The position numbers were made by a program, and so were the translations under genes. A stretch of DNA of 64,000 nt from Paragordius varius (Eukaryota > Animalia > Nematomorpha), in the NCBI GenBank assembly GCA_964247055.1, contig OZ176051.1, forward strand, positions 9,486,001-9,550,000, given 5' to 3'. Below, piece after piece: positions 107 through 39,864 of this stretch. The notes beneath the pieces were generated by a model. It had not been told where the DNA came from. It saw only the letters and a program-made list of their open reading frames with translations, and searched no databases. Within the stretch, counting starts at the first letter, position 1. Every line of letters begins with the position of its first letter.

Positions 107-2638
107 TTAGATGTTTTCTCTTATCATTAGTTTCAATTGATTATTAACTAGAGCGATTTGATCACCGGCCGAAAGACGCAACTTACAAGAATTCGCTCTA
201 CATTCGATTGTATACGGAGACCGATTTTTAGCATACACAGTTATTCTTGTGGAATATTGGTTTGGTAAAAGGTGAGGCTTGATTTGGTCCCAGGTGCTTG
301 CTTTATTATTCCATCTGATATCTAATATATCGGTAAAGGGTAATATATTACACATTAGTAAAAAACGAATATCATTGACATAAGAGGTTTGTTTATAAAC
401 ATTTATTATGGGCAAAATTTTATGCGAATGGTTATAATACTCGTATTCATCAATGACTAAAAATCAAATAAAACTCATTTACGATTGTGTTGTATGCATG
501 GCGATATTTGCTTTCACTAATCAGTTAACATACTGTTGTTTGTTAAATTTTAATTTTACGCCAGTAAGTATTAACTAATGCCCAAACTACATTTTCCGAA
601 AATAAAATACATGCTGAGAATTATAAACTATCTATATAATTTTTAGGTAAATAATAAATAATTCACAATATAATAAAACTTTGTGTGACATATCGCGTAT
701 ATATTCCCTATAGTGAACAAGTAAAAATACATTTTCGTTTATTTTTATTTGTAAATTATTTTTTTAATATTAAAGGGTTGGTATCATGTTAAGTTGCATT
801 ATATCATTAATTTCTTTTAATTTTTTTAAAAAATAAGTACTTTTGGAGGCAGTTTGGCACTCCTTAGCTACCAATTTAATTTCATGTAGAGAATCCGATT
901 TTTTTAGATATATTTTGTCGTATTTGGATATTTCGTTTCTCGAACCACTTAGTATCAACTTATTATTGTCCATGTAGGTTTTAAATTTAGTCAGGTATTC
1001 ATAAGAAGGGCCAAGAATCTCAACATCTTTTATATTCCATCCAAGTGTTGAGAAACTAACTGTATTTTCACACTGATAGTATTTCCGAACACTTTTCGCT
1101 AATATATATTATATTAAATTAAGCCTAATTATTCTATAATAACGTGAGGTTTGTAGATTTTGAATTATTTTAGTAAAAAAATTTATATAACTCAGATTTT
1201 AATATACGTTAATAGAGTTTTCTGAGAGCACTAATACCCAATATGGAATTAACTTGACAAAAAGTTTGCAGCTCATGTTTTTTAATCTTTACGATTAATA
1301 GGTATGTACCGGAATATTTGTATTTATTTTGCATTGGAAAAGATTATAAATGATATATAATTGTAATAAAAAATTAATAATTAAACTTACTTAAACTTTT
1401 GGGCATATATTTAAAGTTTCCAGCTTTGTCCCACGTTCCTATAATACATAGTTTTAAGTTATTTTAGTTTATAACAAAAAGGAGAATTGCTTAAAGAATA
1501 TTGAGAGCATTAACACACTCGCCTTCGAGCATTCAGAGTGATGATGGAAAAATTATACATTTAATTATAAATATATATGAAATGTAAAAAAAATAAAGAA
1601 AACCATCAAATTTAATTATCCATCTTCTATATGCATATTGATTCACGAAAAGGACTAAAAATTCATTAGGAATCGCTGTTATATTAGCTTGAATAGAGCC
1701 GTTGGATTTTTGATATATTCTACAATGACTATAAAGGTTTAATTCACAAGTTTTGGCTAAATTAGGGTCATTGAACAAATCAGAACAATTTTCCTCAAAT
1801 ATAAATCGTCCATTGTAGCTCTTGTAATCCGTCAAAGGGTAGAAAATTTCAAAATAAAGGTTAAGTTCTTTACCATCTATGTTAATGGTCCAAAGTCCAG
1901 CATAATCACATTTACCAGGTATATTAAAGATTAATTTTGTTTTGTTTGACACTTGAAAAGGCATTTCTTTTCCATATTTGGTAGTTATTTGAATGGTAGG
2001 GGGTGTTTTTGAATTTTTAAGAGGTTGCCAAAACTCAGCTATATCGATTTCATACTTTTTGATCTTATTTGGTGATACTATGCCCCCTGTAATTACTAAC
2101 AATTGAAAAATTACTTTGCAAAATATATATGGAAAATATATATAAAATATCTATTGATATTTAAATTGGGCAAAAACCGTAACATAGTGTGTAAGGATAA
2201 CACATATATTGTTTGTTATTCCATGATATTTAGCGAAAGGCGGTTATTACAAAATATATGCATCTTTCACCTATGAATCATACGTAAAAAATTAACACTT
2301 GCACAATGTAAGAGTATTATAATATTAAATTTATTACCTTTAAGCGAAATATTTCCATGCCTTATTGTCACACCATTTTTCAAAACGGAATAAGGGCCAT
2401 CAACTAAATTCACTTTAGGCGCTATCTCTTGATCAAGAAATTGTGAATAATTAACATTAGGGTAGTAAAATGTTCCAAACGCAAAATTGACAGTTATGTT
2501 AGCTCGACCTTGATACTCATCAAGAAGTTGATAATAATATTCTTGACCAAATGAAACCAAGATGTCATCGGGATTTGGTTGCTCCTGAGCTAATATATTG
2601 TAGAACCCAAATAGGAATAAAATTGGTAGTATAATCAT
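107..2638 (-). CDS. Copy A1 of an uncharacterised secreted glycoprotein; 5 exons, predicted 479 aa, apparently intact
   Basis: Manual model: exons 2638-2338, 2086-1604, 1438-1391, 1098-841, 456-107 (301+483+48+258+350 = 1440 nt, open, ends TAA). All introns are GT-AG and phase 1, and the splice sites recur in the paralogous copies. N-terminus MIILPILFLFGFYNILA-QE is signal-peptide-like, with about nine N-x-S/T sequons and no TM segment in the spliced product. Joins track ORFs 2267-2638, 1533-2102, 770-973 and 107-415. The exon-2 donor (G|GTTTTC) is the weakest junction. Confidence 0.75.
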
Positions 2639-2680
2639 TTCAAAAAAATTATAGCTTTGATATTATAATTCTTGGAGGTC

Positions 2681-2687
2681 TTATATA
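2681..2687 (-). promoter_or_regulatory. Candidate TATA box (TATATAA) ~45 nt upstream of the A1 ATG
   Basis: TTCTATATAAGACC lies at the same position in all four copies (e.g. 25115-25121 for A3). The AT-rich background makes this weak evidence. Confidence 0.35.
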
Positions 2688-3861
2688 GAAATGCTTTAAA
2701 ATAAAAATGGGCCCTACATATTATAGGAGATAAAGCAAATATTATTGAAATTTGGTGTATAATGATATTGCAGGCTACTAAATAAATATTTTTTTATTTT
2801 CTTTGGACCAAAAGCCTAATTTTTATGTATATCGACAAAAACATTATGTAAAACTCGTGTCTAATACATTAGTTTTGTAAAATGTCAATATTTGCAATAA
2901 ACCAAAACAACTTTACCGACAGTTATTACGGTAAAAAAATAAATTAAAGTGTATTTGATCTGGCTAAGCTTACAATCTCAAATCTGGTTTAAACACGATC
3001 GCCAATTTTAAATTATATAACTCAAAATTTGTATTATAGTTAATTTATTATATATAAAAAAGGAAATAACTGTATAATTTTATGTGATTTGAAGAGCATG
3101 AAACGGAATCTTATAGAAGGTTCACGACAAAATAATTAATATTGCGAAAAGAAAATATAGAATTACACTGGTAGATTTTCATTAAATAATGCCAACAACT
3201 ATATCTTTATTTTTATTAAATACCAATAAAATGCCAAAAATTTACCTATATGTCGTATTAATTAATAGCTTTTAACAAATATTTTAAATAACCTACTTAA
3301 AAAAGTTTTTGAGCTAACCCACAATTTAGTTACAATTTGGAATGTTTTCAACTTTAAGCGATTATAATTTAAGAAATTAGGAACTTATATATATAATTCG
3401 GCATATTACCTGATGATCAACATGAGCATATATATATCAATAAAATCCCATTTTAAGTCTAAATAGAATTATACTATTTAGTCCAATTCAATACTTTTCT
3501 AACTAAAAGCATATTTTATCAAGTAAAGGCATCATCCTAACTTCCAAACGCAACATTATTTGTAGTTAAAAATTTTATTTTAGACCTGAAATTCAGCTAA
3601 CCATATTAAATCTAAAAGAATTCGTAATATAATTTGTTATAAAATAAAAAATTGTCTTTAAATGCAAAAATAATGTTGCGAAATGAAAAATTTGTCTTGC
3701 TTGAAAAATTTTATGGATAAAAATTGTGGCGGGAGCTATGTTGTGTTATGACATTGGTAATTTTTACCTAATAGTTAACCTGGTAATTATTTAATTTTGA
3801 TGATAATGATTACATATTCTTTTTTCTTAAATGTAAACTATAGAATGTGATTTTTTAAAAT

Positions 3862-4425
3862 ACTAGCGTAAATCTCGTGCTGCTACGCGGGCTATTTGAA
3901 AAAAGGGACAATATGATCCACATATGTGGATTATTTCGAAACATTATATAATAGCTATGATCTCATAGGAATTTTAAAACAGCATTCATACTAATATATT
4001 GTTTACTTGGGCGAAAAAAAAATGATTTTTGTGGACTTAATTTTAAAAAAAATGGCATTTTACGGGGGGAGCGGGTAAGAAGTTGGCCTAAATTAAAAAA
4101 GCGAGCCGACTATGTTCGGCGCAATCGAAAATAATTAAATAAAAATCATATTTGAAAGAGAATGATCCAACACGTTCTCCGGAAAATTGTCTCAAAGACA
4201 CAATTTTTGTGGACTTCTCTTTTCAAAAAAACCGTTTTTTAGACGGGGTGGGCCCGAACTGGGGGTCTAATTTAAAAAAAGGGCCAAGCTATTGTCGGTA
4301 TGATTATATTTTCGTCTGGAAAAAGATCACAAAGCCAGCATTTTCCATTTTTATAAATATATATAGATTTCGATATTGTGCCAAAAATAAACATATCTTT
4401 CTTTTATGGGATATTCATCAAAAAT
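3862..4425. repeat. Dispersed repeat upstream of each A copy (also ~22555-22860, ~41072-41640, and a diverged inverted copy ~45720-46030); left end resembles a Helentron/DINE-1-like terminus
   Basis: ACTAGCGTAAATCTCGTGCTGCTACGCGGG (short subterminal hairpin after ACTAG) followed by a GC-richer block. The family assignment rests on terminal resemblance only. Confidence 0.3.
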
Positions 4426-4569
4426 AAAATTGAATCGTCATTTTTAATGGCAAACGATATATTAATATCATCCTTTTATTTTCTCTAAAATGTTCTCTTA
4501 CGATATACCAAAATTGAGGGCCAAATAACTTAATGACAATAAAAACATTAACACATTTTTCATTCTATA

Positions 4570-6072
4570 ATATTGATGATATTGGATATCTCTTAGTTTA
4601 TGTACAAACTCTGGGGCAGTTGAGACGATTCGACCATATTGTAAGATATCTGCGCAAGTTCTTGGATTAAATGTGGTGTTATATTTTTAATCTAATCTAA
4701 ATATCGTAGCTTAAGCCTTCCAAGTTTCCTAGCCCCTTCAACTGGGCCTAAGATGGTCGCTTTTTCTAAGTTATCGGTTCTCATCACATGTCCGTAAACT
4801 CTGTGCTGAAAGGCATGAATTTTTTGATGAAGGTTAGTTTGGGTTTAATATGTACTAATATTTTGTATTGTATCTTTTGCTCCCATTCTATACCAATATA
4901 TCTATAGGTCCATAACTCAAACGCTTTTATTTTCTTGCAAATGACTTACAGCTTTAATGCATTATTGGAAAACTTATTGATCTATTACACGCTTTTTGAT
5001 GGAATTGGGAATTTTTTTGGAGAATGGATTAAAGTATGATTATTGCATTTTCTGCCATTGCAGCTCTCCTGGTACTGCTGGTTGTAGAGGTTCCATTTAT
5101 TAAATAGTAGATCTGAGGTAAATTAAGTAGTTCTGAATGTTTTGTTCTTAAAATTCACAGTAAGTCCTCTTTTGTTGGGATAAGAATTGTTGCGTCATCT
5201 GCGAAACGCAGGTTATTGATTGTCTCGCCTTCTATTATGATGCCTGCTGAGTCATTTCTATTATTTTTGTGATGTCAGTAAGTTAAATAGCGAAGGTGAT
5301 AGTGTACATCCTTGTCTGACCCTTATTTGTCTATTTATTGTTTGGTTGGGGCTTGCTGAAACTCGTATAAATGCTTTTTCATTTGAAGATTGTTGAGATT
5401 TAATAATGTGCAGGGAAAATCCGCTTCACCCATAGTTTTTAATAGACCACCCTATCAAAGCCTCGGAGTAGTTCAGGAAGGAAAATATTTTTGTTGTATA
5501 CATTTGCTTGTTCTATTATGCGTTTTATATTAGAGATGTGGTCTCGACAACTTTGAGTCGGAAACCAGCCTGTTTATTAGATATGGAGTTTCTGTACCAA
5601 TTCTCTATGCTCATTTGGATTATTTGAAAAGTATTATGTGTTTGTGAGGTATGATAATTCTGCAATAATCGCAATCTTTTCCTTGACATTTTCATGTATA
5701 TTGGTATGAAGATTGATTTAGTCCAGTCTTTTAGCCATCCACAATTTCTTTTGGCCTAACTTGGTTATTATGTCAGTTTGTTTTAGGACTTCTTTCGAAA
5801 TGCGTCCATCCTGGGGTTATGTTCTTAACGATTAGCAATCCTGTATTCAATTCTTGTTTGAGTTATGCTGGGTTCTGTTAAATGTGGAATAATTTGTGCG
5901 GTATTTGTTTTAAAAATTTGCAATGTATTCCTTGTTACATCTTGTTGTTGGTTAGGTGATTCCTTCAATGTGATTTATTTGTGAATTCTATGGGTTTATA
6001 AGGTATTCATATAGGGAGATGCTTCTTTAGACAATTCGTTTCAAATTTGTGGCAAGTATTTAATGCCTGTAT
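4570..6072 (-). mobile_element. Decayed RTE-clade non-LTR retrotransposon, RT region
   Basis: Minus strand gives VRQGCTLSPSLFN (~5320-5283), INNLRFADDATIL (~5220-5180), FLNYSEAL (equivalent to FxDYxKAFD) and YRYIG; many stops and frameshifts. Confidence 0.8.
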
Positions 6073-6521
6073 TTTTGATGTCACATAGCATATATTATTG
6101 GTACCATGCAATCTCGCCATTTTTGCGTTTATTCAAAAAGACAGCCTATTTTAAAGGGGTTAAAATTTTATATAAATAATAATATTTCATATTTAAAAAT
6201 TTATATAAGATTTTTTTGTAATGAACATCTAGTTTTTAACCAAAAAATATATTTAGCATAAAGTGGGCCTATTTTGCCATTTTTCGATCAAAAGTATAAT
6301 TATTTAAAAAGATGTGCCCAAAACCTAAAGGATTATTAAAGTCCTGATTATATCAGATTATATATTTCATCAGGATGTTTTTAGACCGCCCGATTCACTC
6401 TGTGCATATAAAATAAATATACTGTAAGCATGGAATAATTAATATAAAATATAATGTCTTTCAATATTTATTTATTTTAAAGAACCATTTATATCAACTT
6501 AAAGTATTTTTAGAGATCTGA

Positions 6522-8310
6522 TTATCTGAAAAGTAGTATCGTTTTCTTCAGGTTCTGTTTCATAATTGTTGTTATTGTTTTTGAATCAAGAATAGTTGAT
6601 CCCATAACCATTTTGGTATAGCGACCGGTTGACATAGCTAATATGTATATTGAGCACATTTCAAGTGTCTGCGTATCCAAAAAGTTCATCGGGATAGTCA
6701 GGTTTTCATTGTAATTTGAGTATAGGTAACATTTTCGTTTTGACTTTAACAATCTTTCGATGATCTTGAAGAGATATAAGCCAAAATTTAATGTACATTT
6801 GTTTACCCGACCATTCGTCGTTAAAATCAAATTATAATCATGCACTTTCAACATCGAAGAACCTTCGGGCGTTGCGTTAGAGCTCATGCCTTAAAAAATG
6901 TAATTAAATTAATATTTTTGACATAAAATGATAAAATAGATCGTTAACATTATACTTATTGTCAATTCTCCTGCAACAGTGCTTTTGGTTTCGTCTAACA
7001 GGGATTCTAATTTCAGTAAATAGTCACAATATCCGACATTTGATAGTTCTTTTTCTACCGATCTCAAATATAGCATACCTTGACCAACACACCGTATTTT
7101 TTCAAGATGGGGCATACTTATATCTATTGGCGAGTCGTTTAATTGTTGGATAAATAATTGAAAAATCAAAACATCTGCAGTCAATGATATTGAACTTATA
7201 TCTATGTATATCAATAGCACATATATATATATATATATAGATATGTTAAGAAATTACATCGAAAACTTTAAGAACCCAAGTGGTGTCTGATTAATATAGT
7301 GAAATAATCAAAAGAAATAATTATCGGTCTCAATTTTATAATTAATCTCGCAGGTTCTTTGAAATGAAGGACAGGAGCTTTGGATCAAAATATTTGCACA
7401 GACCAAAATTATCAGTTATGTTTATATACTACAAAATTTTTGGCACAAAAAAAATTTTAAACATAATGTAACACATAAACACTATATTACCTTTTCATAT
7501 TTTGTATGATGAGTACCTATATGGATTCTTTGTCCCTGCGCTTTAAACTTATATAGTACAATTATTATTAGGGAAATTATTTTCGCTAAATTAGACCAAA
7601 ATGTTTTTCTAAATTTATATATGTTTAGAATATAGAACCAACACTCGTGACAAACAGCTGATATTAATTTAATAAATTTCTTAACCTGGAATTTTTATCG
7701 AATAATTCCATGTCGGATGATATGACAAAATCAGTAAGGGCAATGTTCCATATTTTTTTAATGGATCCAAGCATTTATATACGATTATTAAAGCTTCAAA
7801 TGACGGTTTTTTCATATCATTTGTGTCTGGATCAAAATATAAAACAAGTTCTGGATATAGGATATGGACATTGATACATTCAACAATGTGAACATTCAAA
7901 CTACATTCCTGTCCATCATATCCCAGATATAATTTTAATTGTGTAAATAATTTTGATTTTGCCAAAACTTGTTTAATAAGAGGGAGCTTTTCCGCAAGTA
8001 AAGCAGAATCCATGATATTTTGATCTTCGTGTAAGCTAAGTTGATTTTCGGAACATGATTGTAAATCCAAATTTTGTATTGGTCTAGTTTCTATCAAATC
8101 GCATAAATTCTAAAATACCTGGAGTAGTGAATTTTGTAAATTTTTCTTCCAATGTCTCTTTAGATTTGATTTCATTTTGAATAAGAGGGGTGATTTTTTC
8201 GTTAACCCTTGTTACAGTCCATTTACTCAATAAAATAAAGGCTAACCATGCCACAATGACTAAAATAAAAGAAATTATAAAAATGAGAAGTATAAAAGTA
8301 GTATCTATAT
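6522..8310 (-). CDS. Synaptotagmin-like gene (N-terminal TM plus two divergent C2-like domains), copy B1; possibly impaired
   Basis: TM FILLIFIISFILVIVAWLAFILL (~8300-8230); C2A-like QLKLYLGYDGQECSLNVHIVEC (ORF 7681-8097); C2B-like start GELTIS and end YNENLTIPMN..IYILAMSTG..MGSTIL. Putative introns 8118-8091 and 6955-6890. The start codon and middle exons are unresolved; canonical Ca-binding Asp residues are not evident. Confidence 0.5.
7221..7239. repeat. (AT)n microsatellite; paralog is longer (50211-50239); another at 48529-48549
   Basis: Seen directly. Confidence 0.9.
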
Positions 8311-9195: not shown

Positions 9196-9196
9196 T

Positions 9197-9204
9197 TGGT
9201 GGCA
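9197..9204 (+). promoter_or_regulatory. Primer-binding site TGGTGGCA
   Basis: One nt after the 5' LTR; complementary to a tRNA 3' end UGCCACCA. This is the end of metazoan tRNA-Leu(AAG/UAG), but only 8 nt match. Confidence 0.7.
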
Positions 9205-9261
9205 ATTCGAGTACCGAACTAAGCTAGTGCTAGTGGAGGTCTTACTGATACCCAATCGAAC

Positions 9262-17750: not shown

Positions 17751-18804
17751 TAAAAATAATTTATGAATAGCTAAAAGCTTTGAGATAATGGACATCGAAA
17801 TGATAAATGCGATTAAAATTCTGGAAAAAAAATAAAATTTTGCAATTTGCGGATAGCATGACAATAGAGGGAAATTCAACTATATTTTATTGTTTATATT
17901 ATTATAAGCCTAATCCAAAACTTCAAAACTTGAATATAGAACGAGATGGGTATTAAAATTTTGTAACCGAACAAATTGGTTCGAACCCAACAAAATCGAT
18001 GCTATTTAAATAAATTTTCTAATCGAACAACTTCCCAAACAATTAAATGAAATAGCCTAGTACTAATTAATACTAAAATAAATTAGGGATTGTATTCACA
18101 AAGGCTTACATCAGTGGTACTCAACAACAAAATATAAAGGGGCGAAAAAAAATATATTGTCGCAATGGTTAACACACCATGTAATACCGATAAAATTTCA
18201 TAGCTTTTTTGACACATTTGCAGATATTTATACTTAAAATAAACATTTAAAAATATAATAAATTTAAGGAGATTCCCTAGGGTCCCGGTTGGAGTACCTC
18301 TGCTAAAATGATTTTAATTATCCTAACCTAATTTAAAAAAATCATATTTACAAAAGGGCATTGTACGGCAGAACCGTGAAAATGAAACCGATAATACTCT
18401 CGCGTCAATAAATATTTCAGCTCAAAACATAAAATAGATATAAAATTTTAGGGCAAATCTAGAAAACACCTAATAATATATTCTAAAAGTTAAATATTTT
18501 ATTGACTGTGTTATTAAATTATTTTTGGAATATAAAAATTTTGAATTTATTTGATAAATCCAAAAACTTTCGCGGGCCGCAAATTGTTGCAGAAGACCGC
18601 GTGTAGGAGAGTGCTGGAAGATAAATGGACAATAAAAATCGAGATATTAGTGTTGGTTTGGTATGAGGCTTTAATTACCTCTTTAAATCAACGTTTTACT
18701 TATTCAAAGTTGTGGGCCCAAATAAGAATTAATTGCCTAAAATGTTTATTATTTATTTGTGAATATAGTTAATTTTTGTAAATCATCACAAAACGAGATA
18801 AGTA

Positions 18805-21308
18805 TTAGATGTTTTTTCTTATCATTAGTTTCAATTGATTATTAACAAGAGCGATTTGATCACCGGCCGAAAGAAGCAACTTTATACAAGAATTTGCTGT
18901 GCATTTGATCGTGTACGGAGACCGATATTTAGCATACACAGTTATTCTTGTGGAATATTGGTTTGGTAACAGGTGAGGCTTGATTTGGTCCCAGGTGCTT
19001 GCCTCACTATTCCATCCGATATCTAATATATCGATAAAGGGTAATATTACACATTAGTAAAAAACGCATATCATTGACATAAGAGGTTTGTTTATATATT
19101 ACGGGCAAATTATGCGAATGGTTATAATACTTGTATTCATCAATGACTAAAAATCTAATAAAACTCATTTACGATTGTGTGAGTATTTGCATAGTTGTTT
19201 TCACTAATCAGCTAACATATTGTTGTTTGTTAAATTTTAATTTTACGCCAGTAAGTATTAACTAATGCCCAAACTACATTTTCCGAAAATAAAATACATG
19301 CTGAGAATTATAAATAATCTATATAATGTTTTATCTAAATAATAAATAATTTAACAATATAATAAAACTTTGTGTGACATATCGCGTATATATATTCCCT
19401 ATAGTGAACATCAAGTAAAAATATATTTTCGTTTATTTTTATTTGTAAATTATTTTTTTTAATATTAAAGGGTTGGTATCATGTTAAGTTGCATTATATC
19501 ATTAATTTCTTTTATTTTTTTAAAAAAATAAGTACTTTTGGAAGCGGTTTGGCACTCTTGAGCTACCAATTTGATTTCATGTAGAGAATCCGATTTTTTA
19601 GATATATTTTGTCGTATTTGGATATAGCTTTTCTCGAACCACTTAGTATCAATTTATTATTGTCCATGTAAGTTTTAAATTTAGTCAGGTATTCATAAGA
19701 AGGGCCAAGAATCTCAACATCTTTTGAATTCCATTCAAGTGTTGAGAAACTAACTGTATTTTCACACTGATAGTATTTCTGAACACTTTCCGCTATAATA
19801 TATATTATATTAAATTAAGCCTAATTATTTAATAATAACGAGAGGTTATGTAGATTTTTAATTTTTATTAGCAAAAAAATTTATTTAATAAAAAAAACTC
19901 AGCGTTTAATAGACGTTAATAGAGTTTTATGAGAGCACTAATACACAATTGGAATTAACTTGAAAAAAACAATTTTTTTGCAATAGAAAAGATGGGTTAC
20001 AAATATGAATAATATATAATTGTATTAGAAAAAAATTAATAATTAAACTTACTTAAACTTTTAGGCATATATTTAAAGTTTCCAGCTTTGTCCCACGTTC
20101 CTGGATAATAATATATAGTTTAAAGTTATTTTTCTAGTTTATAACAAAAAGGACAATTTCTTAAAGATTGAAAACATTAACACACTCGCCTACCAGGATT
20201 CAGAGTGATGATGGAAAAATTATACATTTAATTATAAATATATATGAAATGTAAAAATAAATAATGAAAACCATCAAATTTAATTATCCATCTTCTATAT
20301 GTATATTGATTCACGAAAAGGACTAAAAACTCATCAGGAATCGCTGTTATATTAGCTTGAATAGAGCCGTTGGATATTTGATAAATTCTACCAGGACTAT
20401 AAAGGTTTAATTCACAAGTTTTGGCTAAATTTGGGTCATTGAACAAATCAGAACAATTTTCCTCAAATATAAATCGTCCATTGGCTCTTGTAATCCGTCA
20501 AAGGGTAGAAAATTTCAAAATAAAGGTTAAGTTCTTTACCTTCTATGTTAATGGTCCAAAGTCCAGCATAATCACATTTACCAGGTATATTAAATATTAA
20601 TTTTGTTTTATTTGACACTTGAAAAGGCATTTCTTTTCCATATTTGGTAGTTATTTGAATGGTAGGGGGTGTTTTTGAATTTTTAAGAGGTTGCCAAAAC
20701 TGAGCTATATCGATTTCATACTTTTTGATCATATTTGGTGATACTATGCCCCCTGTAGTTACTATAAATCGAAACATTACATTGCTATTAGATATAGAAA
20801 ATATATAAAACAAAATTATTGATATTGATAAATTAGGCAAAAAACGCAACATAGTGTATAAGGATAACACATAATTGTTATATTGTTATTTAATGATATT
20901 TAGCGAAAAGCGGGAATCACAAAATATATGTATCTTTAGCCTATGAATCATACGTAAAAAATTAACACTTGCACAATGTAAGAGTATTATAATATTAAAT
21001 TTATTACCTTGAAGAGAAATATTTCCATGCCTTATTGTCACACCATTTTTCAAAACGGAATAAGGGCCATCAACTAAATTCAATTTAGGCGCTATCTCCT
21101 GATCAAGAAATTGTGAATAATTAACATTAGGGTAGTAAAATGTTCCAAACGCAAAATTGACAGTTATGTTAGCTCGACCTTGATACGCATCAAGAAGTTG
21201 ATTATAATATTCTTAACCAAATGAAACCCAAATATCATTGGGATTTGGTTGCTCCTGAGCTAATGTACTGTAGAACCCAAATAGGAAGAAAATTGGTAGA
21301 AAAATCAT
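18805..21308 (-). pseudogene. Copy A2 of the secreted-protein gene (disrupted)
   Basis: Co-linear with A1. TAA replaces Gln32 (21215-21213); 2-nt deletion in exon 2 (~20483); 1-nt loss in an exon-4 homopolymer (~19575-19590); 2-nt deletion in exon 5 (~19045). Confidence 0.8.
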
Positions 21309-22999
21309 TTCAAAAAATTTAATAGCTTTGATATAATTATTGGAGGTCTTATATAGAAATGCTTTAAAATAAAAATGGGCCCTACACTATTAAAGAGATA
21401 AAGCAAATATTATTAAAATTTGGCAATGTATAATGATATTGCAGGCTACAAAATAAATATTTTTAAAAATATTTTGGACCAAAGCCTAATTTTTATGTAT
21501 TTCGACAAAAACATTATGTAAAACCCGTGCCTAATACGTTAGTTTTGTAAAATGTCAATATTTGCATTAAACCAAAACAACTTAACCGACAGTTATTACT
21601 GTAAAAACATAAATTTAAATAATGTATTTGATCTGGCTAAGTTTACAATCTTAAATCTGGTTTAAACACGATCGCCAATTTTAAATTATATAACTCAAAG
21701 TTTGTATTATAGTTAATTTATTATATATAAAAAAGGAATTAACTGTATAATTTTAAGTGATTTTAAGAGCATAAAACGGAATCATTTAGAAGGTTCACGA
21801 CAAAATAATTAATTTTGCGAAAAGAAAATATAGGGATGCACTGGTAGTTTTTCATTAAAACAACTATATCTTTATTTTTATGAAATACCAATGAAATACC
21901 CAAAATTTACCTATATGTCGTATAAATTAATAGCTTTTAACAAATATTTTAAATTACCTACTTAAAAAAGTTTTTAAGCCAACCCACAATTTAGTTACAA
22001 TTTGGAATGTTTTCAACTTTAAGCGATTATAATTTAAGAAATTAGGAACTTATATATATAATTCGGCATATTACCTGATGATCAACATGAGCATATATAA
22101 ATCAATGAAAATCCCATTTTAAGTCTAAATAGAATTATACCATTTAGTCCAATTCAACACTTTTCCAACTAAACGCACATTTTATCAAGTAAAGACAGCA
22201 TCGTAACTTCTAAACGTAACATTATTTGTAGTTAAAAATTTTATTAAAGACCTGAAATTCAGCTAACCATATAAAATCTAAAAGAATTCGTAATTTAATT
22301 TATATAATAAAAAAATTGTCTTTAAATGCAAAAATAATGTTGCGAAATGAAAATTTTGTCTTGCTTGAAAAATTTTATGGATAAAAATTGTGGCGGGAGC
22401 TTGATAAAATGTTGCGATTGTTATGACAATGTTGATTTTTACCTAATAGTTAACCTGGTAATTATTTAATTTTTATGATAATGATTACATATTCATTTTC
22501 TTAGTCTAATGCAGCTTAATTAATGTAAACTATAGAATGTGATTTTTTAAAATACTAGTGTAAATCTCGTGCTGCTACGCGGGCTATTTGAAAAAAGGGA
22601 CAATAAAATGATTCACATATGTGGATTATTTCGAAACATTATTTAATAGCTATGATCTCATAGGAATTTTAAAACAGTGCATTCATACTAATATATTGTT
22701 TACTTGGGCGAAAAATAAAAAATGATTTTTGTGGACTTAATTTTTTTCAAAAAAATGGCATTTTACGGGGGGAGGGGTAAAAAGAGGGCCTAAATTAAAA
22801 AAGCCAGCCGACTATGTTCGGCGCAATCGAAAATAAGTAACAAAAATCATATTTGAAAGAGAATGATACACAGTCTTTCCGAACCAGAAGATTTTATGAA
22901 ATATTTATCTACGATGAATGTTATTTTTTTATAACAATAATTTTACAAGTTAAAAAACATTTTTTGTTAAATTTTATTTTTATCACTCGCGACACCATA

Positions 23000-23250
23000 A
23001 ATTTACTGGGCAAAAAATTTAGATTGTTGGAGAAATTATTTGATTTTGTAAAAATATGTTTAATTATTGGAAACACTAAAATATTATTGGGCAATATAAT
23101 TCGATTGTTAATAAAATTATTTCATTGTTGAAAATATATGTTTGAATGTAAACACTAAAAGGTTATTGGGCATTCTAGAAAATATATGTTTAATTGTTAA
23201 AAATACTAAAGAATTATTTGGCAAATTATTTTGATTAATAAAAAAAAATT
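23000..23250. repeat. Degenerate minisatellite (about 3 units of ATATGTTTAATT..ACACTAAAA..TTATTGGGCA); inverted copy ~45310-45560
   Basis: The recurrent motif is visible directly. Confidence 0.5.
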
Positions 23251-23399
23251 TGATTGTTGTTTTATAGTGTTTAATAGTGTAAATTTATGTGTAAGAGGCG
23301 CATCACAAACGGTCGTATTAATACATAAGTAACACAAAAATAAAATTAATCATATAATAAAATATTTCACCTCGATTAAAAGGTAGTCTAATATGTGAT

Positions 23400-23693
23400 C
23401 ACTATGATTAACCTAATTCAGAAGTATCTAACAAGGCCGCATGTCCCTTCCAAAATATTTATGGAGTTAATTTTAATTACATTTTAAGAGATCTAAGCAT
23501 AAGCGATTTTCTTAAAAAAATCTTCTCAAAAATTTGGCATGATCTAGCTAAAATTGTTAAAATAAACAGTGATTTGTGCACTCTTATGTTTTAAATTCAA
23601 TAAACTTTTTATTAATGCCCATATATTTTGTTCGGCCCGTCAAATCTTTGATGCAAGCATGCCGTCCGCGAAGCTATTTGTATTTCACCCCTG
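23400..23693 (-). mobile_element. hAT/Charlie-like MITE remnant (inverted copy from 44865)
   Basis: Terminus CAGGGGTGAAATAC with downstream GGGCCG; related CAGGGGTCGGCAACCT termini occur at ~15211 and ~53626. The opposite TIR and TSD were not found. Confidence 0.35.
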
Positions 23694-23769
23694 CCCTAGA
23701 TATACTACATAGTTGCAATCAAATTATATAATTTGCTTTTAATAGTAATTACTACAGGTATTATTTAGT

Positions 23770-24210
23770 TAATTACCTTTTGAAAAAATTTGTATATTAT
23801 CGTAAGTAAATTTCCATAAGCTAAATTGACAGTTATTTTAGCTACTGAATTTCTAGTTAATCTTTCTTTCTTGGCATTATGTCTATATATCTTAAAATTT
23901 ACCTGAATTCAATAACATATTCAGTAGGAGTAAGTGGTAGTTTAGAGCATTCAATTAAATATACAGTTGAGATAAATAATTATTAAATTTGGCAACCTAC
24001 TAAAAATATATTATTAAATAATGGACCAAAGCTTAAATTTTCTATATATCTAGGTTGACAAAAATATTTCGGGTCTAAGTTTGGTAAAAAAATTCCAATT
24101 TTTGCCTTAAACGAAAACAACTTGTTTGAACTGTAACAAACGGAAATACTAAATAAATATTATTTTTCGTGGCTAAACTTACAAAACAATTCTGGTCAAA
24201 CACGATCTAA
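23770..24210 (-). pseudogene. Old, strongly diverged 5' fragment (upstream region plus exon 1) of the same secreted-protein family
   Basis: The minus strand encodes ..VAKITVNLAYGNL.. versus RANITVNFAFGTF in A1, and PTEYVIEF versus PDDILVSF. Upstream GGCTAAACTTACAA..TCTGGTCAAACACGATC (24171-24207) matches 2962-3000. Stops and frameshifts are present. Confidence 0.55.
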
Positions 24211-25160
24211 ATCGAAATAAATCTATATGTTTATGTAATATTATATCCAATAAACAATCTCCGCTGTCCCAACAATCACTGAAAACCCCTAACATTTAGT
24301 GCCTAGTGCTTTATTAATTGTAAAATAAAATGATGTCAATGTACAATTCAATATATTTTTTCTGAATAAATATAATCTATAATACCAACAGTGATGTGGT
24401 AACTGTTATGTTAAGTTAGATCATAAAGATAGTATATAATAATGAAGTTGAAAACATTCCAAATTGTAACTAAATTGTGGGTTGGCTCAAAAACTTTTTT
24501 AAGTAGGTAATTTAAAATATTTGTTAAAAGCTATTAATTAATACGACCTATAGGTAAATTTTTGGCATTTTATTGGTATTTAATAAAAATAAAGATATAG
24601 TTGTTGGCATTATTTAATGAAAATCTACCAGTGTAATTCTATATTTTCTTTTCGCAAAATTATTTATTTTGTCGTGAACCTTCTATAAGATTCCGTTTCA
24701 TGTTCTTAAAATCACTTAAAATTATACAGTTAATTCCTTTTTTATATATAATAAATTAACTATAATACAAACTTTAAGTTTTATATAATTTAAAATTGGC
24801 GATCGTGTTTAAACCAGATTTGAGATTGTAAGCTTAGCCAGATCAAATACACTTTAATTTATTTTTTTACCGTAATAACTGTCGGGCAAGTTGTTTTGGT
24901 TTATTGCAAATATTGACATTTTACAAAACTAATGTATTAGACACGAGTTTTACATAATGTTTTTGTCGAAATACATAAAAATTAGGCTTTTGGTCCAAAG
25001 AAAATTAAAAAATATTTATTTAATAGCCTGCAATATCATTATACATTGCCAAATTTCAATAATATTTGCTTTATCTCCTTTAATATGTAGGGCCATTTTA
25101 TTTTAAAGCATTTCTATATAAGACCTCCAAGAATTATATCAAAGCTATTAATTTTTTGAA

Positions 25161-27693
25161 ATGATTTTACTACCAATTTTCTTCCTATTTGGGTTCTACA
25201 GTACATTAGCTCAGGAGCAACCGAATCCCGATGACATTTTGGTTTCATTTGGTCTAGAATATTATTATCAACTTCTTGATAAGTATCAAGGTCGAGCTAA
25301 CATAACTGTCAATTTTGCGTTTGGAACATTTTACTACCCTAATGTTAATTATTCACAATTTCTTGATCAAGAGATAGCGCCTAAATTGAATTTAGTTGAT
25401 GGCCCTTATTCCGTTTTGAAAAATGGTGTGACAATAAGGCATGGAAATATTTCTCTTCAAGGTAATAAATTTAATATTATAATACTCTTACATTGTGCAA
25501 GTGTTAATTTTTTACGTATGATTCATAGGCGAAAGATGCATATAATTTGTAATAACCGCCTTTCGCTAAATATCATAATAAACAATGTGTTATCCTTACA
25601 CACTAAGTTACGTTTTTTGCCCAATTTAAATATCAATAGATATTTTATATATATTTTCCATATATATTTTGCAAAGTAATTTTTCAATTTTTAGTAATTA
25701 CAGTGGGCATAGTATCACCAAATAAGATCAAAAAGTATGAGATCGATATAGCTGAGTTTTGGCAACCTCTTAAAAATTCAAAAACACCCCCTACCATTCA
25801 AATAACTACCAAATATGGAAAAGAAATGCCTTTTCAAGTGTCAAACAAAACAAAATTAATAATTAATATACCTGGTAAATGTGATTATGCTGGACTTTGG
25901 ACTATTAACATAGATGGTAAAGAACTTAACCTCATTTTGAAATTTTCTACCCTTTGACGGTACAAGAGCTACAATGGACGATTTATATTTGAGGAAAATT
26001 GTTCTGATTTGTTCAATGACCCAAATTTAGCCAAAACTTGTGAATTAAACCTTTATAGTCCTGGTAGAATTTATCAAATATCCAACGGCTCTATTCAAGC
26101 TAATATAACAGCGATTCATAATGAATTTTTAGTCCTTTTCGTGAATCAATATACATATAGAAGATGGATGATTAAATTTGATGGTTTTCATTATTTATTT
26201 TTACATTTCATATATATTTATAATTAAATGTATAATTTTTCCATCATCACACTGAATGCTCGAAGGCGAGTGTGTTAATGCTCTCAAAATTCTTTATGCA
26301 ATTCTCCTTTTTGTTATAAACTAGAAAAATAACTTAAAACTATGTATTATTTATCCAGGAACGTGGGACAAAGCTGGAAACTTTAAATATATGCCCAAAA
26401 GTTTAAGTAAGTTTAATTATTAATTTTTTTATTACAATTATATATTATTCAATATTTAACATCTTTTCCATTGCAAAAAAAACAAATATTCCGGTACATA
26501 CCTATTAATCGTAAATATTAAAAAACATGAGCTGCAAACTTTTTGTCAAATTAATTCCATATTGGGTATTAGTGCTCTCAGAAAACTCTATTAACGTATA
26601 TTAAAATCTGAGTTATATAAATTTTTTTACTAAAATTATTAAAAATCTGCAAACCTCACGTTATTATAGAATAATTAGGCTTAATTTAATATAATATGTT
26701 TAGCGAAAAGTGTTCGGAAATACTATCAGTGTGAAAATACAGTTAGTTTCTCAACACTTGGATGGAATATAAAAGATGTTGAGATTCTTGGCCCTTCTTA
26801 TGAATACCTGACTAAATTTAAAACCTATATGGACAATAATAAGTTGATACTAAGTGGTTCGAGAAAAGAAATATCCAAATACGACAAAATATATCTAAAA
26901 AAATCGGATTCTCTACATGAAATCAAATTGGTAGCTCAAAAGTGCCAAACTGCTTCCAAAAGTACTTATTTTTTTAAAAAATTTAAAGGAAATTAATGAT
27001 ATAATGCAACTTAACATGATTCCAACCCTTTAATATTGAAAAAATAATTTGCAAATAAAAATAAACGAAATTGTATTTTTACTTGATGTTCACTATAGGG
27101 AATAAATATACGCGATATGTCACACAAAGTTTTATTATATTGTTAAATTATTTATTATTTAGATAAAACATTATATAGATTATTTATAATTCTCAGCATG
27201 TATTTTATTTTCGGAAAATGTAGTTTGGGCATTAGTTAATACTTACTGGCGTAAAATTAAAATTTAACAAACAACAATTATTAGCTGATTAGTGAAAACA
27301 ACCATGCAAATACTCACACAATCGTAAATGAGTTTTATTAGATATTTAGTCATTGATGAATACGAGTATTATAACCATTCGCATAATTTGCCCGTAATAT
27401 ATAAACAAACCTCTTATGTCAATGATATGCGTTTTTTACTAATGTGTAATATATTACCCTTTATCGATATATTAGATATCGGATGGAATAGTGAGGCAAG
27501 CACCTGGGACCAAATCAAGCCACACCTGTTACCAAACCAATATTCTACAAGAATAACTTTGTATGCTAAATATCGGTCTCCGTATACAATCAAATGCAGA
27601 GCGAATTCTTGTATAAAGTTGCTTCTTTCGGCCGGTGATCAAATCGCTCTTGTTAATAATCAATTGCAACTAATGATAATAGAAAACATCTAA
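25161..27693 (+). pseudogene. Copy A3 of the secreted-protein gene (inverted; intact except for one lesion in exon 2)
   Basis: Exons 25161-25461, 25704-26183, 26359-26406, 26704-26961, 27350-27693. Exon 2 has -1 and -2 deletions (net -3) that enclose an in-frame TGA at 25955-25957; all other exons are open. Confidence 0.75.
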
Positions 27694-28795
27694 TACTTAT
27701 CTCGTTTTGTGATGATTTACAAAAATTAACTATATCTCACAAATAAATAATAAACATTTTAGGCAAATTCTTATTTGATCCCACAACTTTGAATAAGTAA
27801 AACGTTGATTTAAAGAGATAATTAAAGCCTCATAAACCAACAGTAGTATCTCGATTCCATTTATCTACCAGCACTGTCCTACACGCGGCCTTCTGCAATA
27901 ATTTGCGGCCCGCGAAAGTTTTTGGATTTATCAAATAAATTCATAATTTTAATATTCCAAAAATAATTTAATAACAACAATAAAATATTTAACTTTTAGA
28001 ATATATTTTTAGGTGTTGTTTAGATTTGCCCTAAAATTTTATATCTATTTTATGTTTTGAGCTGAAATATTTATTGAAGCGAGAGTATTATCGGTTTCAT
28101 TTTCACGGTTATGCCGTACGTAAAAGCCCTTTTTTAAATATGATTTTTGTATATTAGGTTAGGATTATTGAAATCATTTTATTAGTGGTACTCCTACAAT
28201 GACCCTAAGGGATCTTTTTCCCTTAAATAATTTAATATATTTTGAAATGTTTATTTTAAGTATAAATATCTGCAAATGTGTCAAATATCTCTGAAATTTT
28301 TATCGGATTACATGGTTACTTGGCCCTTGCGACAAGATAATTTTTTTTCGTCCCTTTATCTTTTGTTGTTGAGTACCAATGCCGTAAGCTTTTGTGAATA
28401 CAATCAATAATTTATATTAGCATTATTTATTACTAGGCTATTTCATTTACCAATAGTTTGGGAAGTTGTTCGATTAGAAAATTTATTTAAATAGCATCGA
28501 ACTTAGCAAGAACATGTTCCGTTGGGTTCGAACCAACCTGTTTGGTTACAAAATTTAATCTTCATCTCGTTCTATATTCAAATTTTGAAGTTTAGGATTA
28601 GGCTTATGATACATATACATAATTATAATTGAGTTTCCCTCTATTGGTTAATATTTTATTCAAGCTAATGTGCGATAAAAATGTTATTTTCCCGCAAATT
28701 GCAAGAAATAATTACTTTTTTTCCAGAATATTAATCGCATTTATCATTTCGATGTCCATTATCTTAAAGCTTTTAGCTATTCATAAATTATTACT

Positions 28796-32897: not shown

Positions 32898-34500
32898 GAT
32901 AATAATAATATTAAATTATATGCAATTTAGCCCTATCAAAGTATTTAATGTTACAATCGACCACAAATTATCTCCCACAGAATCCGCCCTCTTTGCAGAT
33001 AGTCTTTGAAGGCGGCGCTCGCGTCGACGTTGGCGTTTGGCGTAGTGGAGTCTCTCCTCTTCCTTTAACAATTCGTTCTTAATATGAATACACCTATACT
33101 ACCAACCCCCATTTAGCACTAGAGTTATAAAGTCTGACTCCGCAAGGCCCCCACGCTGCAGGAATTCATACGTCCAAGCCATGTTTTTTACACTTCCAAT
33201 AAGCTGGGCCGGGATCCAGTTTTAATTCCAGTTGCCTTAAGCGGACTCATTTCATTATGGCGCAGTTGATGGGATACCACATTCAGACTTGATAACGGTA
33301 TTCCCAGCACGAGAGGCAAGGTATCGGTTTTTAAGTGAAGTTTACAAGTGGCAAGTTGGCACCGTGTTTTCTTGGAGTAGATATCACCTGTGATGACTTT
33401 CAACGATTTATTTACAAATACCTGAGCCTTGCGGGTATACTTGATAGAATTTGGCCACACCGACAATCATAGAATTCTACGAAGGATTAGAATTTTAAAC
33501 ATTTTTAACTTCAGCTTTTGGCCAACCTCTTTCGAGCGCCATGAACAATGTGAACCGTCAAAAATGAGCTTTGCGGAATGCAACCTGAATAGAAGTGATT
33601 TAAGGGCGCATCCGTTTTATCCGCCATAACTCCCAGGTATCGAAAGGACTCCACAACCTCAAGCTCCCCTCCAGTGTGGAACATCCTCATATCAGACCTA
33701 TTATCATCACTTTTGACTTTTCATAATTAATATTTATGCCAATAGTCGTCAGTTCAGATTCCAGCTGGTCCAGAGCCTGTCCCAGGTTTTTCTCCGTATC
33801 CGTTAAGATGCAAAGGTCGTCTGAATAGCAGAGCACCTGGAAAAAGACGTTGGGAAAGCTCGCATATAATTTTCGTACTATTGAGTCCATAGCCAAATTG
33901 AAGAGTTTAGGGGACAGAGGGCATCCTTGCTTCAGGCCTCGTTCCAAGTAGATGTAGTCCGAACGGGTCGTTTCAACTGCCACCCGACTTCGTGGTCGGA
34001 TTATCAAGTGAACTATAATCTTAAAATTTTCTACCATATCAACCTTCTTCAAACGCATGACGTTCTTCCTATCTAGTTTATCAAATGCCTTGGCTATATC
34101 CACAAAGCCCAAGTAGAGCGGGTGCTTATGTCGCCTGCTTTTTAGGATGAATATTACCAATGAACAGAATAAATCCATCGTTCCCCTGCCCCGCTTAAAA
34201 CCCCATATTGCGTGATGAAAATCATTATCAAAGGACTGCAGTCTAGAAAGGGCAATGTTGGTCAATACCTTGTACACTGTGTTCACCAGGGCTATACCCC
34301 TGTAATCATTGAGGGTGCCTCGATTCTCCTGTTTTGCGATATTAATTACCTCGCATTCCACCCATTCCTCCATCAGTGTGCCACGTTCTAACCAACTATT
34401 GATGACAGGCAAGATTTTGTCGATGCACCAGTTTATTTCCTTTTTCCAGACATCCGCCGCACTGCGATCTGGCCCTGGGCATTTATAATTTCGTAAAAAG
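32898..34500 (-). mobile_element. 5'-truncated non-LTR retrotransposon (RTE-like RT plus C-terminal domain), few disruptions
   Basis: KCPGPD, DYRGIALVNTVYK, FVDIAKAFD, GLKQGCPLSP, YSDD, VVESFRYLG and QVFVNKSLKVI; the ORF ends ~32915 followed by a short (ATT)n tail. Confidence 0.88.
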
Positions 34501-36270: not shown

Positions 36271-37344
36271 TTTATGAATAGCTAAAAGCTTTGAGATAAT
36301 GGACATCGAAATGATAAATGCGATTAAAATTCTGAAAAAAAGTATTAAATTTTCAATTTGCGAATAGCATTTTTATCGCACATTAGATTAAATAAAATAA
36401 TAAACAATAGAGGAAAATTCAACTATATATTATTGTTTATATTATTATAAGCCTAATCCAAAACTTGAATATAGAACGAGATGGGTATTAAAATTATTGT
36501 AACCGAACAAATTGGTTCGAACCCAACGAAATATGTTTCTACGTTCGATACTATTTAAATAAATTTTCTAATCGAGCAACTTCCCAAACAATTGGTAAAT
36601 GAAATAGCCTAGTACTAATTAATGATAAAATAAATTAGGGATTTTTTTCACAAAGGCTTACAGCAGTGGTTACAAAATATAAAGGGACGAAAAAAAAATA
36701 TCTTGTCGCAATGGTTAAGCACACACCATGTAATACCGATAAAATTTCATAGCTTTTTTGACACATTTGCAGATATTTATACTTAAAATAAACATTTAAA
36801 AATATAATAAATTTAAGGAGATTCCCTAGGGTCACGGTTGGAGTACCTCTGCTAAAATGATTTTAATAATCCTAACCTAATTTAAAAATATCATATTTAC
36901 AAAAGGGCATCGTACGGCAGAACCGTGAAAATAAAACCGATAATACTCTCGCGTCAATAAATATTTCAGCTCAAAACATAAAATAGATATAAAATTGTAG
37001 GGCAAATCTAGACAACACCTAATAATATATTCTAAAAGTTAAATATTTTATTGACTGTGTTATTAAATTATTTTTGGAATATTAAAATTTTGAATTTATT
37101 TGATAAATCCAAAAACTTTCGCGGGCCGCAAATCGTTGCAGAAGACCGCGTGTAGGAGAGTGCTGGAAGATAAATGGACAATAAAAATCGCAATACTAGT
37201 GTTGGTTTGGTATGAGGCTTTAATTACCTCTTTAAATCAACGTTTTACTTATTCAAAGTTGTGGGCCCAAATAAGAATTAATTGCCTAAAATGTTTATTA
37301 TTTATTTGTTAATTTTTGAAAATCATCACAAAACGAGATAAGGA

Positions 37345-39864
37345 TTAGATGTTTTCTCTTATCATTAGTTTCAATTGATTATTAACTAGAGCGATTTGAT
37401 CACCGGCCGAAAGACGCAACTTACAAGAATTCGCTCTACATTCGATTGTATACGGAGACCGATTTTTAGCATACACAGTTATTCTTGTGGAATATTGGTT
37501 TGGTAAAAGGTGAGGCTTGATTTGGTCCCAGGTGCTTGCTTTATTATTCCATCTGATATCTAATATATCGGTAAAGGGTAATATATTACACATTAGTAAA
37601 AAACGCATATCATTGACATAAGAGGTTTGTTTATAAACATATAGTATGGGCAAAATTTATTCGAATGGTTATAATACTCGTATTCATCAATGACTAAAAA
37701 TCAAAAACTCATTTACGATTGTGTGAGTGTATGCATGGCGATATTTGTTTTCACTAATCAGTTAACATACTGTTGTTTGTTAAATTTTAATTTTACGCCA
37801 GTAAGTATTAACTAATGCCCAAACTACATTTTCCGAAAATAAAATACATGCTATATATAATTTTTTATCTAAATAATAAATAATTTAACAATATAATAAA
37901 ACTTTGTGTGACATATCGCGTATATTTATTCCCTATAGTGAACATCAAGTAAAAATACATTTTCGTTTATTTTTATTTGTAAATTATTTTTAATATTAAA
38001 GGGTTGATGTTAAGTTGCATTATATCATTAATTTCTTTTAATTTTTTTAAAAAAATAAGTACTTTTGGAAGCAGTTTGGCACTTTTGAGCTACCAATTTG
38101 ATTTCATGTAGAGAATCCGATTTTTTTAGATATATTTTGTCGTATTTGGATATTTCTTTTCTCGAACCACTTAGTATCAACTTATTATTGTCCATATAGG
38201 TTTTAAATTTAGTCAGGTATTCATAAGAAGGGCCAAGAATCTCAACATCTTTTATATTCCATCCAAGTGTTGAGAAACTAACTGTATTTTCACACTGATA
38301 GTATTTCCGAACACTTTTCGCTAAACATATTATATTAAATTAAGCCTAATTATTCTATAATAACGTGAGGTTTGCAGATTTTTAATAATTTTAGTAAAAA
38401 AATTTATATAACTCAGATTTTAATATACGTTAATAGAGTTTTCTGAGAGCACTAATACCCAATATGGAATTAATTTGACAAAAAGTTTGCAGCTCATGTT
38501 TTTTAATATTTACGATTAATAGGTATGTACCGGAATATTTGTTTTTTTTGCAATGGAAAAGATGTTAAATATTGAATAATATATAATTGTAATAAAAAAA
38601 TTAATAATTAAACTTACTTAAACTTTTGGGCATATATTTAAAGTTTCCAGCTTTGTCCCACGTTCCTGGATAAATAATACATAGTTTTAAGTTATTTTTC
38701 TAGTTTATAACAAAAAGGAGAATTGCATAAAGAATTTTGAGAGCATTAACACACTCGCCTTCGAGCATTCAGTGTGATGATGGAAAAATTATACATTTAA
38801 TTATAAATATATATGAAATGTAAAAATAAATAATGAAAACCATCAAATTTAATCATCCATCTTCTATATGTATATTGATTCACGAAAAGGACTAAAAATT
38901 CATTATGAATCGCTGTTATATTAGCTTGAATAGAGCCGTTGGATATTTGATAAATTCTACCAGGACTATAAAGGTTTAATTCACAAGTTTTGGCTAAATT
39001 TGGGTCATTGAACAAATCAGAACAATTTTCCTCAAATATAAATCGTCCATTGGCTCTTGTAATCCGTCAAAGGGTAGAAAATTTCAAAATAAAGGTTAAG
39101 TTCTTTACCATCTATGTTAATGGTCCAAAGTCCAGCATAATCACATTTACCAGGTATATTAATTATTAATTTTGTTTTGTTTGACACTTGAAAAGGCATT
39201 TCTTTTCCATATTTGGTAGTTATTTGAATGGTAGGGGGTGTTTTTGAATTTTTAAGAGGTTGCCAAAACTCAGCTATATCGATTTCATACTTTTTGATCT
39301 TATTTGGTGATACTATGCCCCCTGTAATTACTAAAAATTGAAAAATTACTTTGCAAAATATATATGGAAAATATATATAAAATATCTATTGATATTTAAA
39401 TTGGGCAAAAAACGTAACATAGTGTGTAAAGATAACACATTGTTTATTATGATATTTAGCGAAAGGCGGTTATTACAAAATATATGCATCTTTCGCCTAT
39501 GAATCATACGTAAAAAATTAACACTTGCACAATGTAAGAGTATTATAATATTAAATTTATTACCTTGAAGAGAAATATTTCCATGCCTTATTGTCACACC
39601 ATTTTTCAAAACGGAATAAGGGCCATCAACTAAATTCAATTTAGGCGCTATCTCTTGATCAAGAAATTGTGAATAATTAACATTAGGGTAGTAAAATGTT
39701 CCAAACGCAAAATTGACAGTTATGTTAGCTCGACCTTGATACTCATCAAGAAGTTGATAATAATATTCTTGACCAAATGAAACCAAAATGTCATCGGGAT
39801 TTGGTTGCTCCTGAGCTAATGTACTGTAGAACCCAAATAGGAATAAAATTGGTAGTAAAACCAT
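37345..39864 (-). pseudogene. Copy A4 of the secreted-protein gene (disrupted)
   Basis: Co-linear with A1. It has the same 2-nt exon-2 deletion as A2 (~39051) and a 1-nt deletion near the start of exon 5 (~37657). Confidence 0.75.

Follow-up and report, generated by a model that had tools for sequence, protein, structure and literature searches.

Interlocus gene conversion is familiar from gene-pseudogene pairs such as CYP21A2/CYP21A1P. Cassette systems, namely the pseudo-V genes of chicken immunoglobulin (Ig), the VSG genes of Trypanosoma, vlsE of Borrelia and pilE/pilS of Neisseria, have one expression site and promoterless, truncated donors, and their transfers are directional, in many cases somatic or clonal, and limited to variable coding segments. 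We describe here a stretch of 64,000 nucleotides (nt) of Paragordius varius (C2:9486001-9550000, hereafter the window), from a genome of 110 Mb in 44 contigs, which harbours four paralogous copies (A1 to A4) of one gene. An earlier note on this DNA had described the copies as patchworks of each other, and the patchwork was confirmed to be real. It is very probably the outcome of recurrent and ongoing interlocus (non-allelic) gene conversion in a young ten-copy array of a gene that is lineage-specific and encodes a secreted protein. Tracts of about 100 bp to 2 kb would have been copied between paralogues lying 6-120 kb apart, in either orientation, and intact and broken copies alike would have taken part in the copying. 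The process would be germline and neutral or nearly so; the fallback of the earlier note, that neutral conversion would give the same pattern, is the reading favoured by the evidence.

The closest known system is interlocus gene conversion and concerted evolution in human segmental duplications (PMC4467073; bioRxiv 10.1101/135152). The locus resembles such systems in its short patches, transferred one way between paralogues that are over 90% identical, its mosaic phylogenies, the movement of lesions between gene and pseudogene copies, the use of direct as well as inverted partners, and a divergence of the units that is decoupled from that of their flanks. Unlike the human examples, it concerns an orphan family in a very AT-rich invertebrate genome, some of its tracts reach about 1-2 kb, and a whole 5-kb unit (B2) was apparently overwritten. 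With the cassette systems it shares a cluster of homologous copies in direct and inverted orientation, of which some are non-functional, and segmental transfer that results in mosaics. It differs from them in having six intact copies, donors that are complete genes, and transfers in many directions that include introns and flanks.

Layout of the array and state of its copies

The window has a G+C content of about 27% and carries four copies of a repeat unit of at least 3.35 kb, with pairwise identities of 94-98% (Table 1). When 220 kb around the window were examined, the cluster was found to continue beyond the window edge and to hold ten full-length units (C2 9.366-9.527 Mb), of which the six lying upstream were named B1 to B6. 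A super-block of this tandem and inverted array is duplicated, and the four window copies make up its distal half. The earlier picture of one intact gene accompanied by silent copies holds inside the window, where only A1 is intact, but not in the cluster, where B1, B2, B3, B5, B6 and A1 are intact and B4, A2, A3 and A4 are broken; with six intact copies out of ten, that layout arises from where the window ends. The cluster has two inverted copies, B4 and A3, and neither of them is intact.

The family extends well beyond the cluster. When the whole genome was searched in six frames with exon 2, 37 matches were obtained, including at least 20 further family members outside the cluster, and the family overall comprises more than 30 loci in several tandem clusters. 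Other tandem clusters lie at C10:48-95 kb, C2:14.44-14.48 Mb, C5:12.31-12.33 Mb, C7:7.87-7.93 Mb and C8:1.63-1.65 Mb; their exon-2 identity is 38-79%, and in-frame stops are present in some.

The exons of A1 were derived from open frames, GT/AG sites and the limits of conservation in paralogues of 40-80% identity. The gene comprises 1305 nt (434 codons and a stop) in five exons, with GT/AG at each junction and all introns in phase 1, and the N-terminus of its product is hydrophobic and signal-peptide-like; the protein is predicted to be secreted. The broken copies retain the ATG, the signal-peptide exon, all splice sites and the 700-bp upstream flank, and carry one to three young lesions each. 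Those of A2 are a TAA in exon 1 (21215-21213), a TA deletion in exon 2 (~20483) and the loss of 1 nt from an A7 run in exon 4 (~19599). Exon 2 of A3 has lost 1 nt at ~25932 and 2 nt at ~25961; the two sites are separated by 30 nt, and a TGA (25955) lies in the interval. Different broken copies have suffered 2-nt deletions of exon 2 on three independent occasions, at ~20483/~39052, at ~25961 and in B4 at A1 position 1704, and all of these lie outside homopolymers.

Probable gene conversion read against an internal clock

Relationships among A1 to A4 switch along the gene, as had been noticed before, and the motifs given for them were found in the sequence. In exon 5, A1 agrees with A4 (IRWNNKAST, KNRSP, CKLRL) and A2 with A3 (IGWNSEAST, KYRSP, CIKLLL). 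In the 3' part of exon 2 the motifs of A3 are SPGRIYQI, IHNEF and WMI, the DNA of A4 is identical to that of A3, and A1 is the outlier (SHCRIYQK), while in intron 1 and around exons 3-4 the outlier is A2. The 2-nt TA deletion (A1 position 1817) is common to A2 (~20483) and A4 (~39052) and does not occur in A3. No single tree fits. The three possible four-taxon partitions occupy separate stretches: 13|24 upstream, 12|34 at A1 positions 2263-906 and 14|23 at 615-1.

Recurrent gene conversion or ectopic recombination, which the earlier note had proposed, is strongly supported by the pairwise homoplasy index (PHI), identical runs, segment trees, approximately unbiased (AU) tests, the comparison of flanks with units, and copying-model painting. 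The PHI was 0.154 for A1-A4 as against 0.615 ± 0.039 in permuted data, 0.146 as against 0.376 ± 0.011 for all ten copies, and 0.135 as against 0.343 ± 0.013 for the six intact copies, with p = 0.0005, the permutation floor, in each case. Maximal runs of concordant polymorphic sites were sought with a GENECONV-like scan, with 10,000 permutations for each pair; B6 was left out because its divergent 5' region confounded the ten-copy run. The scan returned A3=A4 (122 polymorphic sites over 1034 bp, p = 0.0001), B5=A4 (896 bp, per-pair p within 1e-4 to 4e-4), B5=A3 (355 bp, p = 0.0004) and A2=A4 (28 polymorphic sites over 158 bp, p = 0.0002), the last of which holds the shared TA deletion. Maximum-likelihood trees of adjacent segments gave clades that were strongly supported and yet incompatible: (B5,A3) at 100/98 in 2649-1860, (A3,A4) at 99/95 in 1855-822, and (B4,A3) at 95/95 with (B1,B6) at 100/99 in 821-1. 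AU tests rejected each of these clades when applied to the other segments (p between 9e-3 and 2e-65), and a clade of A1 and B1 was rejected on segment 821-1 (p = 0.0026). Converted tracts cross introns and the 5' and 3' flanks as readily as exons.

The duplicated super-block provides an internal clock, its partner units being B1-A1, B2-A2, B4-A3 and B5-A4. Spacings in the two blocks agree once a young retrotransposon is removed from the comparison; about 40 kb carrying B3 are present only in the upstream block. Four stretches of unique flank differ between the blocks by p-distances of 0.0083, 0.0027, 0.0071 and 0.0084 (about 0.7%), and the gene units by 0.0072 (B1/A1), 0.0160 (B5/A4), 0.0292 (B4/A3) and 0.0563 (B2/A2). 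Partner units are thus up to eight times as divergent as unique flanks of the same age, which point mutation cannot produce, so that the units must have taken up sequence since they were duplicated. The conversion events that are legible against this clock number at least half a dozen.

The best resolved event lies in A3. In the segments 3354-2704, 2703-1860, 1855-822 and 821-1, A3 showed 16, 35, 37 and 13 mismatches to its partner B4, 35, 3, 6 and 37 to B5, and 20, 12, 0 and 36 to A4; the tract common to A3 and A4 was also seen as an inverted repeat pair of 1084 nt with 99% identity. The central ~1.9 kb of A3 would therefore appear replaced by sequence of the A4/B5 lineage, both ends having remained B4-like. 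As A3 is inverted relative to A4, and the patch is flanked on both sides by A3's own lineage, a simple crossover is excluded and non-crossover conversion is indicated. Within the tract A4 is near its partner B5 (6 mismatches) and A3 is far from B4 (37), which fits a transfer from A4 to A3; by parsimony with the positional partners, we infer this direction for the central tract.

A4 and A1 are mosaics too. Painting of A4 gave a B3/B6-like state upstream, followed by B2 at 2575-1856 (1 mismatch), A3 (0) and B5 at 1199-1 (1). A1 was painted as B1 down to position 368 and was identical to A4 over its last 367 nt, a stretch whose exon-5 state is carried by intact B5 as well. A1 and B1 are separated by 24 substitutions, only 4 of them private to one copy; the remainder and most indels are shared with other paralogues and lie in short clusters, such as 1724/1716 common to B3 and B6, and the 3' end of B1 common to B6.

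Could the chimeras have been made while the array was being built, by duplication and unequal crossing-over alone, with no conversion afterwards? We consider this very unlikely. Nested segmental duplications clearly gave rise to the array, and chimeras with a single breakpoint, for example A1 (B1-like and then A4-like at the 3' end), could come from an unequal crossover, but the internal patches of A3 and A4 are flanked on both sides by the recipient lineage. Moreover, a single crossover between A3 and its inverted donor would invert the interval, the units diverge far beyond flanks that stem from one duplication event, and A1 and B1, duplicated about 0.7% ago, nevertheless differ by imported clusters.

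One lesion appears to have been transferred along with the sequence around it. The TA deletion, the sole lesion of A4, lies within a short tract common to A2 and A4 (Table 1), and the frameshift was apparently passed between these two copies by that tract. Five copies with the same local sequence lack the deletion, so that it probably moved by conversion and was not a systematic sequencing error.

An assembly artefact, in which consensus or polishing ran across paralogues, haplotypes were mixed, or the A- and B-blocks are haplotypes falsely placed in tandem, is quite unlikely as the source of the mosaics. Regions with many copies at 92-99% identity are prone to error, the flanks of the two blocks differ by 0.3-0.8%, which is within the range of invertebrate heterozygosity, the exon-4 deletion of A2 sits in a homopolymer, and the mosaics are read from the assembled sequence. 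However, there is no N across the 220 kb, which lie inside a 15.2-Mb contig, and the tracts are long, clean and sharp-ended. Copy-specific indels within identical tracts, 2-nt deletions outside homopolymers and the absence of the TA deletion from the five copies of the same context argue against polishing artefact or systematic error. The two blocks also differ in content, since the retrotransposon is confined to the A-block, both other copies having an empty site, and the ~40 kb with B3 to the B-block. Even if the blocks were haplotypes, the discordance of units and flanks would need non-allelic conversion.

The largest event concerns B2 (C2:9380933-9384284), which is intact and 98% like A4 and B5, while its twin A2 is a much-diverged pseudogene. 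Their far flanks are only 0.7% apart and the units 5.6%, for which the simplest explanation is that B5/A4-like sequence overwrote B2, so that of an older lineage only A2 survives. A near-complete overwriting of one whole 5-kb unit is thus probable, and B2 was possibly repaired by conversion. Substitutions private to A2 number 69 and form clusters along the unit, and 49 of them were derived and 15 ancestral relative to the outgroup L008; an assembly-wide search for a donor of these variants found none better than the cluster copies, at 89-91%. Hypermutation of A2 was ruled out, as the private changes show no excess of transitions or of C-to-T changes (30/69 transitions).

The earlier note had also seen in the layout what a cassette-based diversification system would look like, in which A1 would be expressed and the broken copies, direct and inverted, would serve as silent donors, in the manner of VSG, vlsE, pilE/pilS or chicken pseudo-V. 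That suggestion did not survive the extension to the cluster, with its six intact copies, complete broken genes and tracts running through introns and flanks, and programmed diversification of this kind is exceedingly improbable here. A1 is indeed the only intact copy inside the window, it matches pseudogene A4 exactly in exon 5 and at the 3' end, exon 2 combines a hypervariable patch with a ratio of nonsynonymous to synonymous polymorphism (pN/pS) of 0.89, and exclusive variants link intact B5 with broken A2 (7 sites) and A3 (3 sites). Many family members lie elsewhere in the genome, however, and the broken copies extend over the full length of the gene and carry recent lesions, unlike donors that are truncated and lack a promoter; nor are transfers confined to variable coding segments. 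The best-resolved transfer appears to run from pseudogene to pseudogene (A4 to A3), A1 is only 0.7% from its sister B1, which equals the flanks, and its exon-5 state is not peculiar to it, being also that of B5.

Several points weigh against recurrent, nearly neutral conversion as we propose it. The PHI and GENECONV-like statistics are custom implementations and not the reference programs, and since the segment limits were picked after inspection of the data, the AU p-values are optimistic. Transfer directions depend on parsimony with the positional partners, and the evidence as a whole is the assembled sequence. Furthermore, diversity among intact copies is higher in exon 2 (0.060) than in introns (0.027-0.046), an excess that comes from the B3/B6 subgroup as compared with the rest; together with the exon-2 pN/pS, this suggests that the system may not be wholly neutral.

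Other elements of the window

A Ty3/gypsy-type retrotransposon with long terminal repeats (LTRs) has an uninterrupted open reading frame (ORF) of 1309 codons at 9262-13191 with protease, reverse transcriptase, RNase H and integrase domains. Its site is empty in both paralogous blocks, and the insertion is therefore very young. A minus-strand ORF of 241 codons (33687-34412) with a reverse-transcriptase domain (E = 6e-32), located in a G+C-richer stretch at 30-35 kb, is probably a fragment of another retroelement. Three minus-strand ORFs of 121, 103 and 138 codons are co-duplicated with A1 and A4 (6522-8097 and 49500-51091) and match no Pfam family; they may belong to a repeat or form exons of a second orphan gene. 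About 5.2 kb (43825-49047) are present in the A4 copy of the large duplication and absent from the A1 copy, where the junction is at 6071/6074. Rfam and tRNA scans of the window found nothing, as did Pfam searches of eight neighbouring ORFs.

Table 1. Coordinates of the gene units, genes, conversion tracts and other features (window positions unless prefixed C2)
Feature	Position	Strand	Remarks
A1 unit	1-3354		Gene on minus
A2 unit	18690-22019		Gene on minus
A3 unit	24445-27806		Inverted, gene on plus
A4 unit	37239-40578		Gene on minus
A1, intact gene	107..2638	minus	Exons 2638-2338, 2086-1604, 1438-1391, 1098-841, 321-107
A2, pseudogene of old lineage	18805..21308	minus	Three lesions
A3, inverted pseudogene	25161..27693	plus	Exon-2 lesions
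A4, pseudogene	37345..39864	minus	Sole lesion the 2-nt TA deletion at ~39052, as in A2
Duplicated super-block	C2:9362428-9445476 vs 9481654-9527507		Partners B1-A1, B2-A2, B4-A3, B5-A4
A2+A3 head-to-head inverted pair	17861..28646		Arms 17861-22019 and 28646-24445, ~91-93% identical, spacer ~2.4 kb
A4 repeat unit with shared flanks	36404..41714	minus	Pairs with 1-16608 as large direct segmental duplication, period ~37.2 kb
A3 conversion tract	25934..26981	plus	Equals A4 39090-38043 at 122/122 polymorphic sites; 1034 bp, A1 coordinates 1855-822
A4 side of the A3=A4 tract	38043..39090	minus	Probable donor lineage; 6 mismatches to partner B5
A3 segment matching B5	25093..25741	plus	2 mismatches/649 nt; putative A4 lineage before A4 itself changed
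A4 segment nearest B2, not partner B5	39091..39801	minus	1 mismatch/711 nt
A1 3' end including whole exon 5	1..367	minus	Identical to A4 37239-37605; sister B1 is B6-like there
A2/A4 short tract with TA deletion	20376..20531	minus	A4 38945-39100; pair otherwise among the most divergent in the cluster (94.9%)
Ty3/gypsy-type LTR retrotransposon	8903-13498		LTRs ~296 nt, near-identical; 5-bp target duplication ATGAC

The encoded protein and the meaning of the array

Searches and folds of the product were run exon by exon. Exon ORFs had no match in Pfam, a sequence profile search of PDB gave nothing below E = 0.03, an ESM Atlas search gave no match, and phmmer found no homologue of exon 2 among 1.84 billion representative proteins. 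The sole phmmer match, a bacterial repeat protein, was rejected as spurious, being made up of nine matches to one 20-residue motif. AlphaFold2, given 19 paralogous exon-2 sequences, modelled exon 2 as all-beta, with two tandem beta-sandwich domains and a predicted local distance difference test (pLDDT) score of 91.5. The top Foldseek matches of this model were tandem Ig chains (IL-18 receptor alpha, pIgR, titin, NCAM), with E down to 1.6e-6 and probability 1.0, and VIA-align superposed exon-2 residues 1-83 on I-set domains with Z ~8 and a root-mean-square deviation of ~2 Å over 71-78 residues. A fold search with the exon-1 model (pLDDT 73) gave no significant match.

On these models, the product is predicted to be an orphan secreted protein with Ig-like domains in exon 2. 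Its likeness to the tandem I-set domains of titin, twitchin, NCAM, IL-18 receptor alpha and pIgR is that of the exon-2 fold, and its introns, all in phase 1, are of the kind common in genes for extracellular domains. Unlike I-set proteins, it has no Pfam match to Ig, I-set or V-set and no PDB sequence match, and its identity to the structural matches is about 10%; unlike canonical Ig domains, it has no evident intradomain Cys pair in domain 1 of A1.

Ratios of nonsynonymous to synonymous substitution (dN/dS) among the intact copies were 0.29-0.79. By exon, pN/pS was 0.51 in exon 1, 0.89 in exon 2, 0.20 in exon 4 and 0.54 in exon 5, and exon 3 was invariant. We infer purifying selection on exons 1, 4 and 5; the value for exon 2 fits relaxed or locally diversifying selection without being proof of it. 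A 17-bp patch of exon 2 (window positions 1849-1865 in A1) has ten substitutions between the B3/B6 subgroup and the rest, and its strand is the most variable stretch of the whole-family alignment.

A more adaptive reading would make the array a germline diversity engine for the Ig-like secreted proteins of this parasite. The broken and inverted copies would then be a reservoir of variant segments, shuffled into six genes taken as expressed, from which the broken copies would occasionally be repaired, with selection favouring new combinations in the hypervariable patch of exon 2; B2 would be a copy restored by conversion, and A4 one just disabled. We hold this to be unlikely. It is also a possibility that the head-to-head A2-A3 pair yields double-stranded RNA that regulates the family.

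Since interlocus gene conversion is a textbook mechanism, the findings do not change the view of how multigene families evolve. Their value is that of a clean, datable example, which includes the apparent spread of a frameshift between copies and the probable overwriting of one unit. They also document an orphan, rapidly expanding family of predicted secreted proteins with an Ig-like fold. If these proteins act at the host interface, the conversion-driven shuffling of the variable patch would matter biologically.

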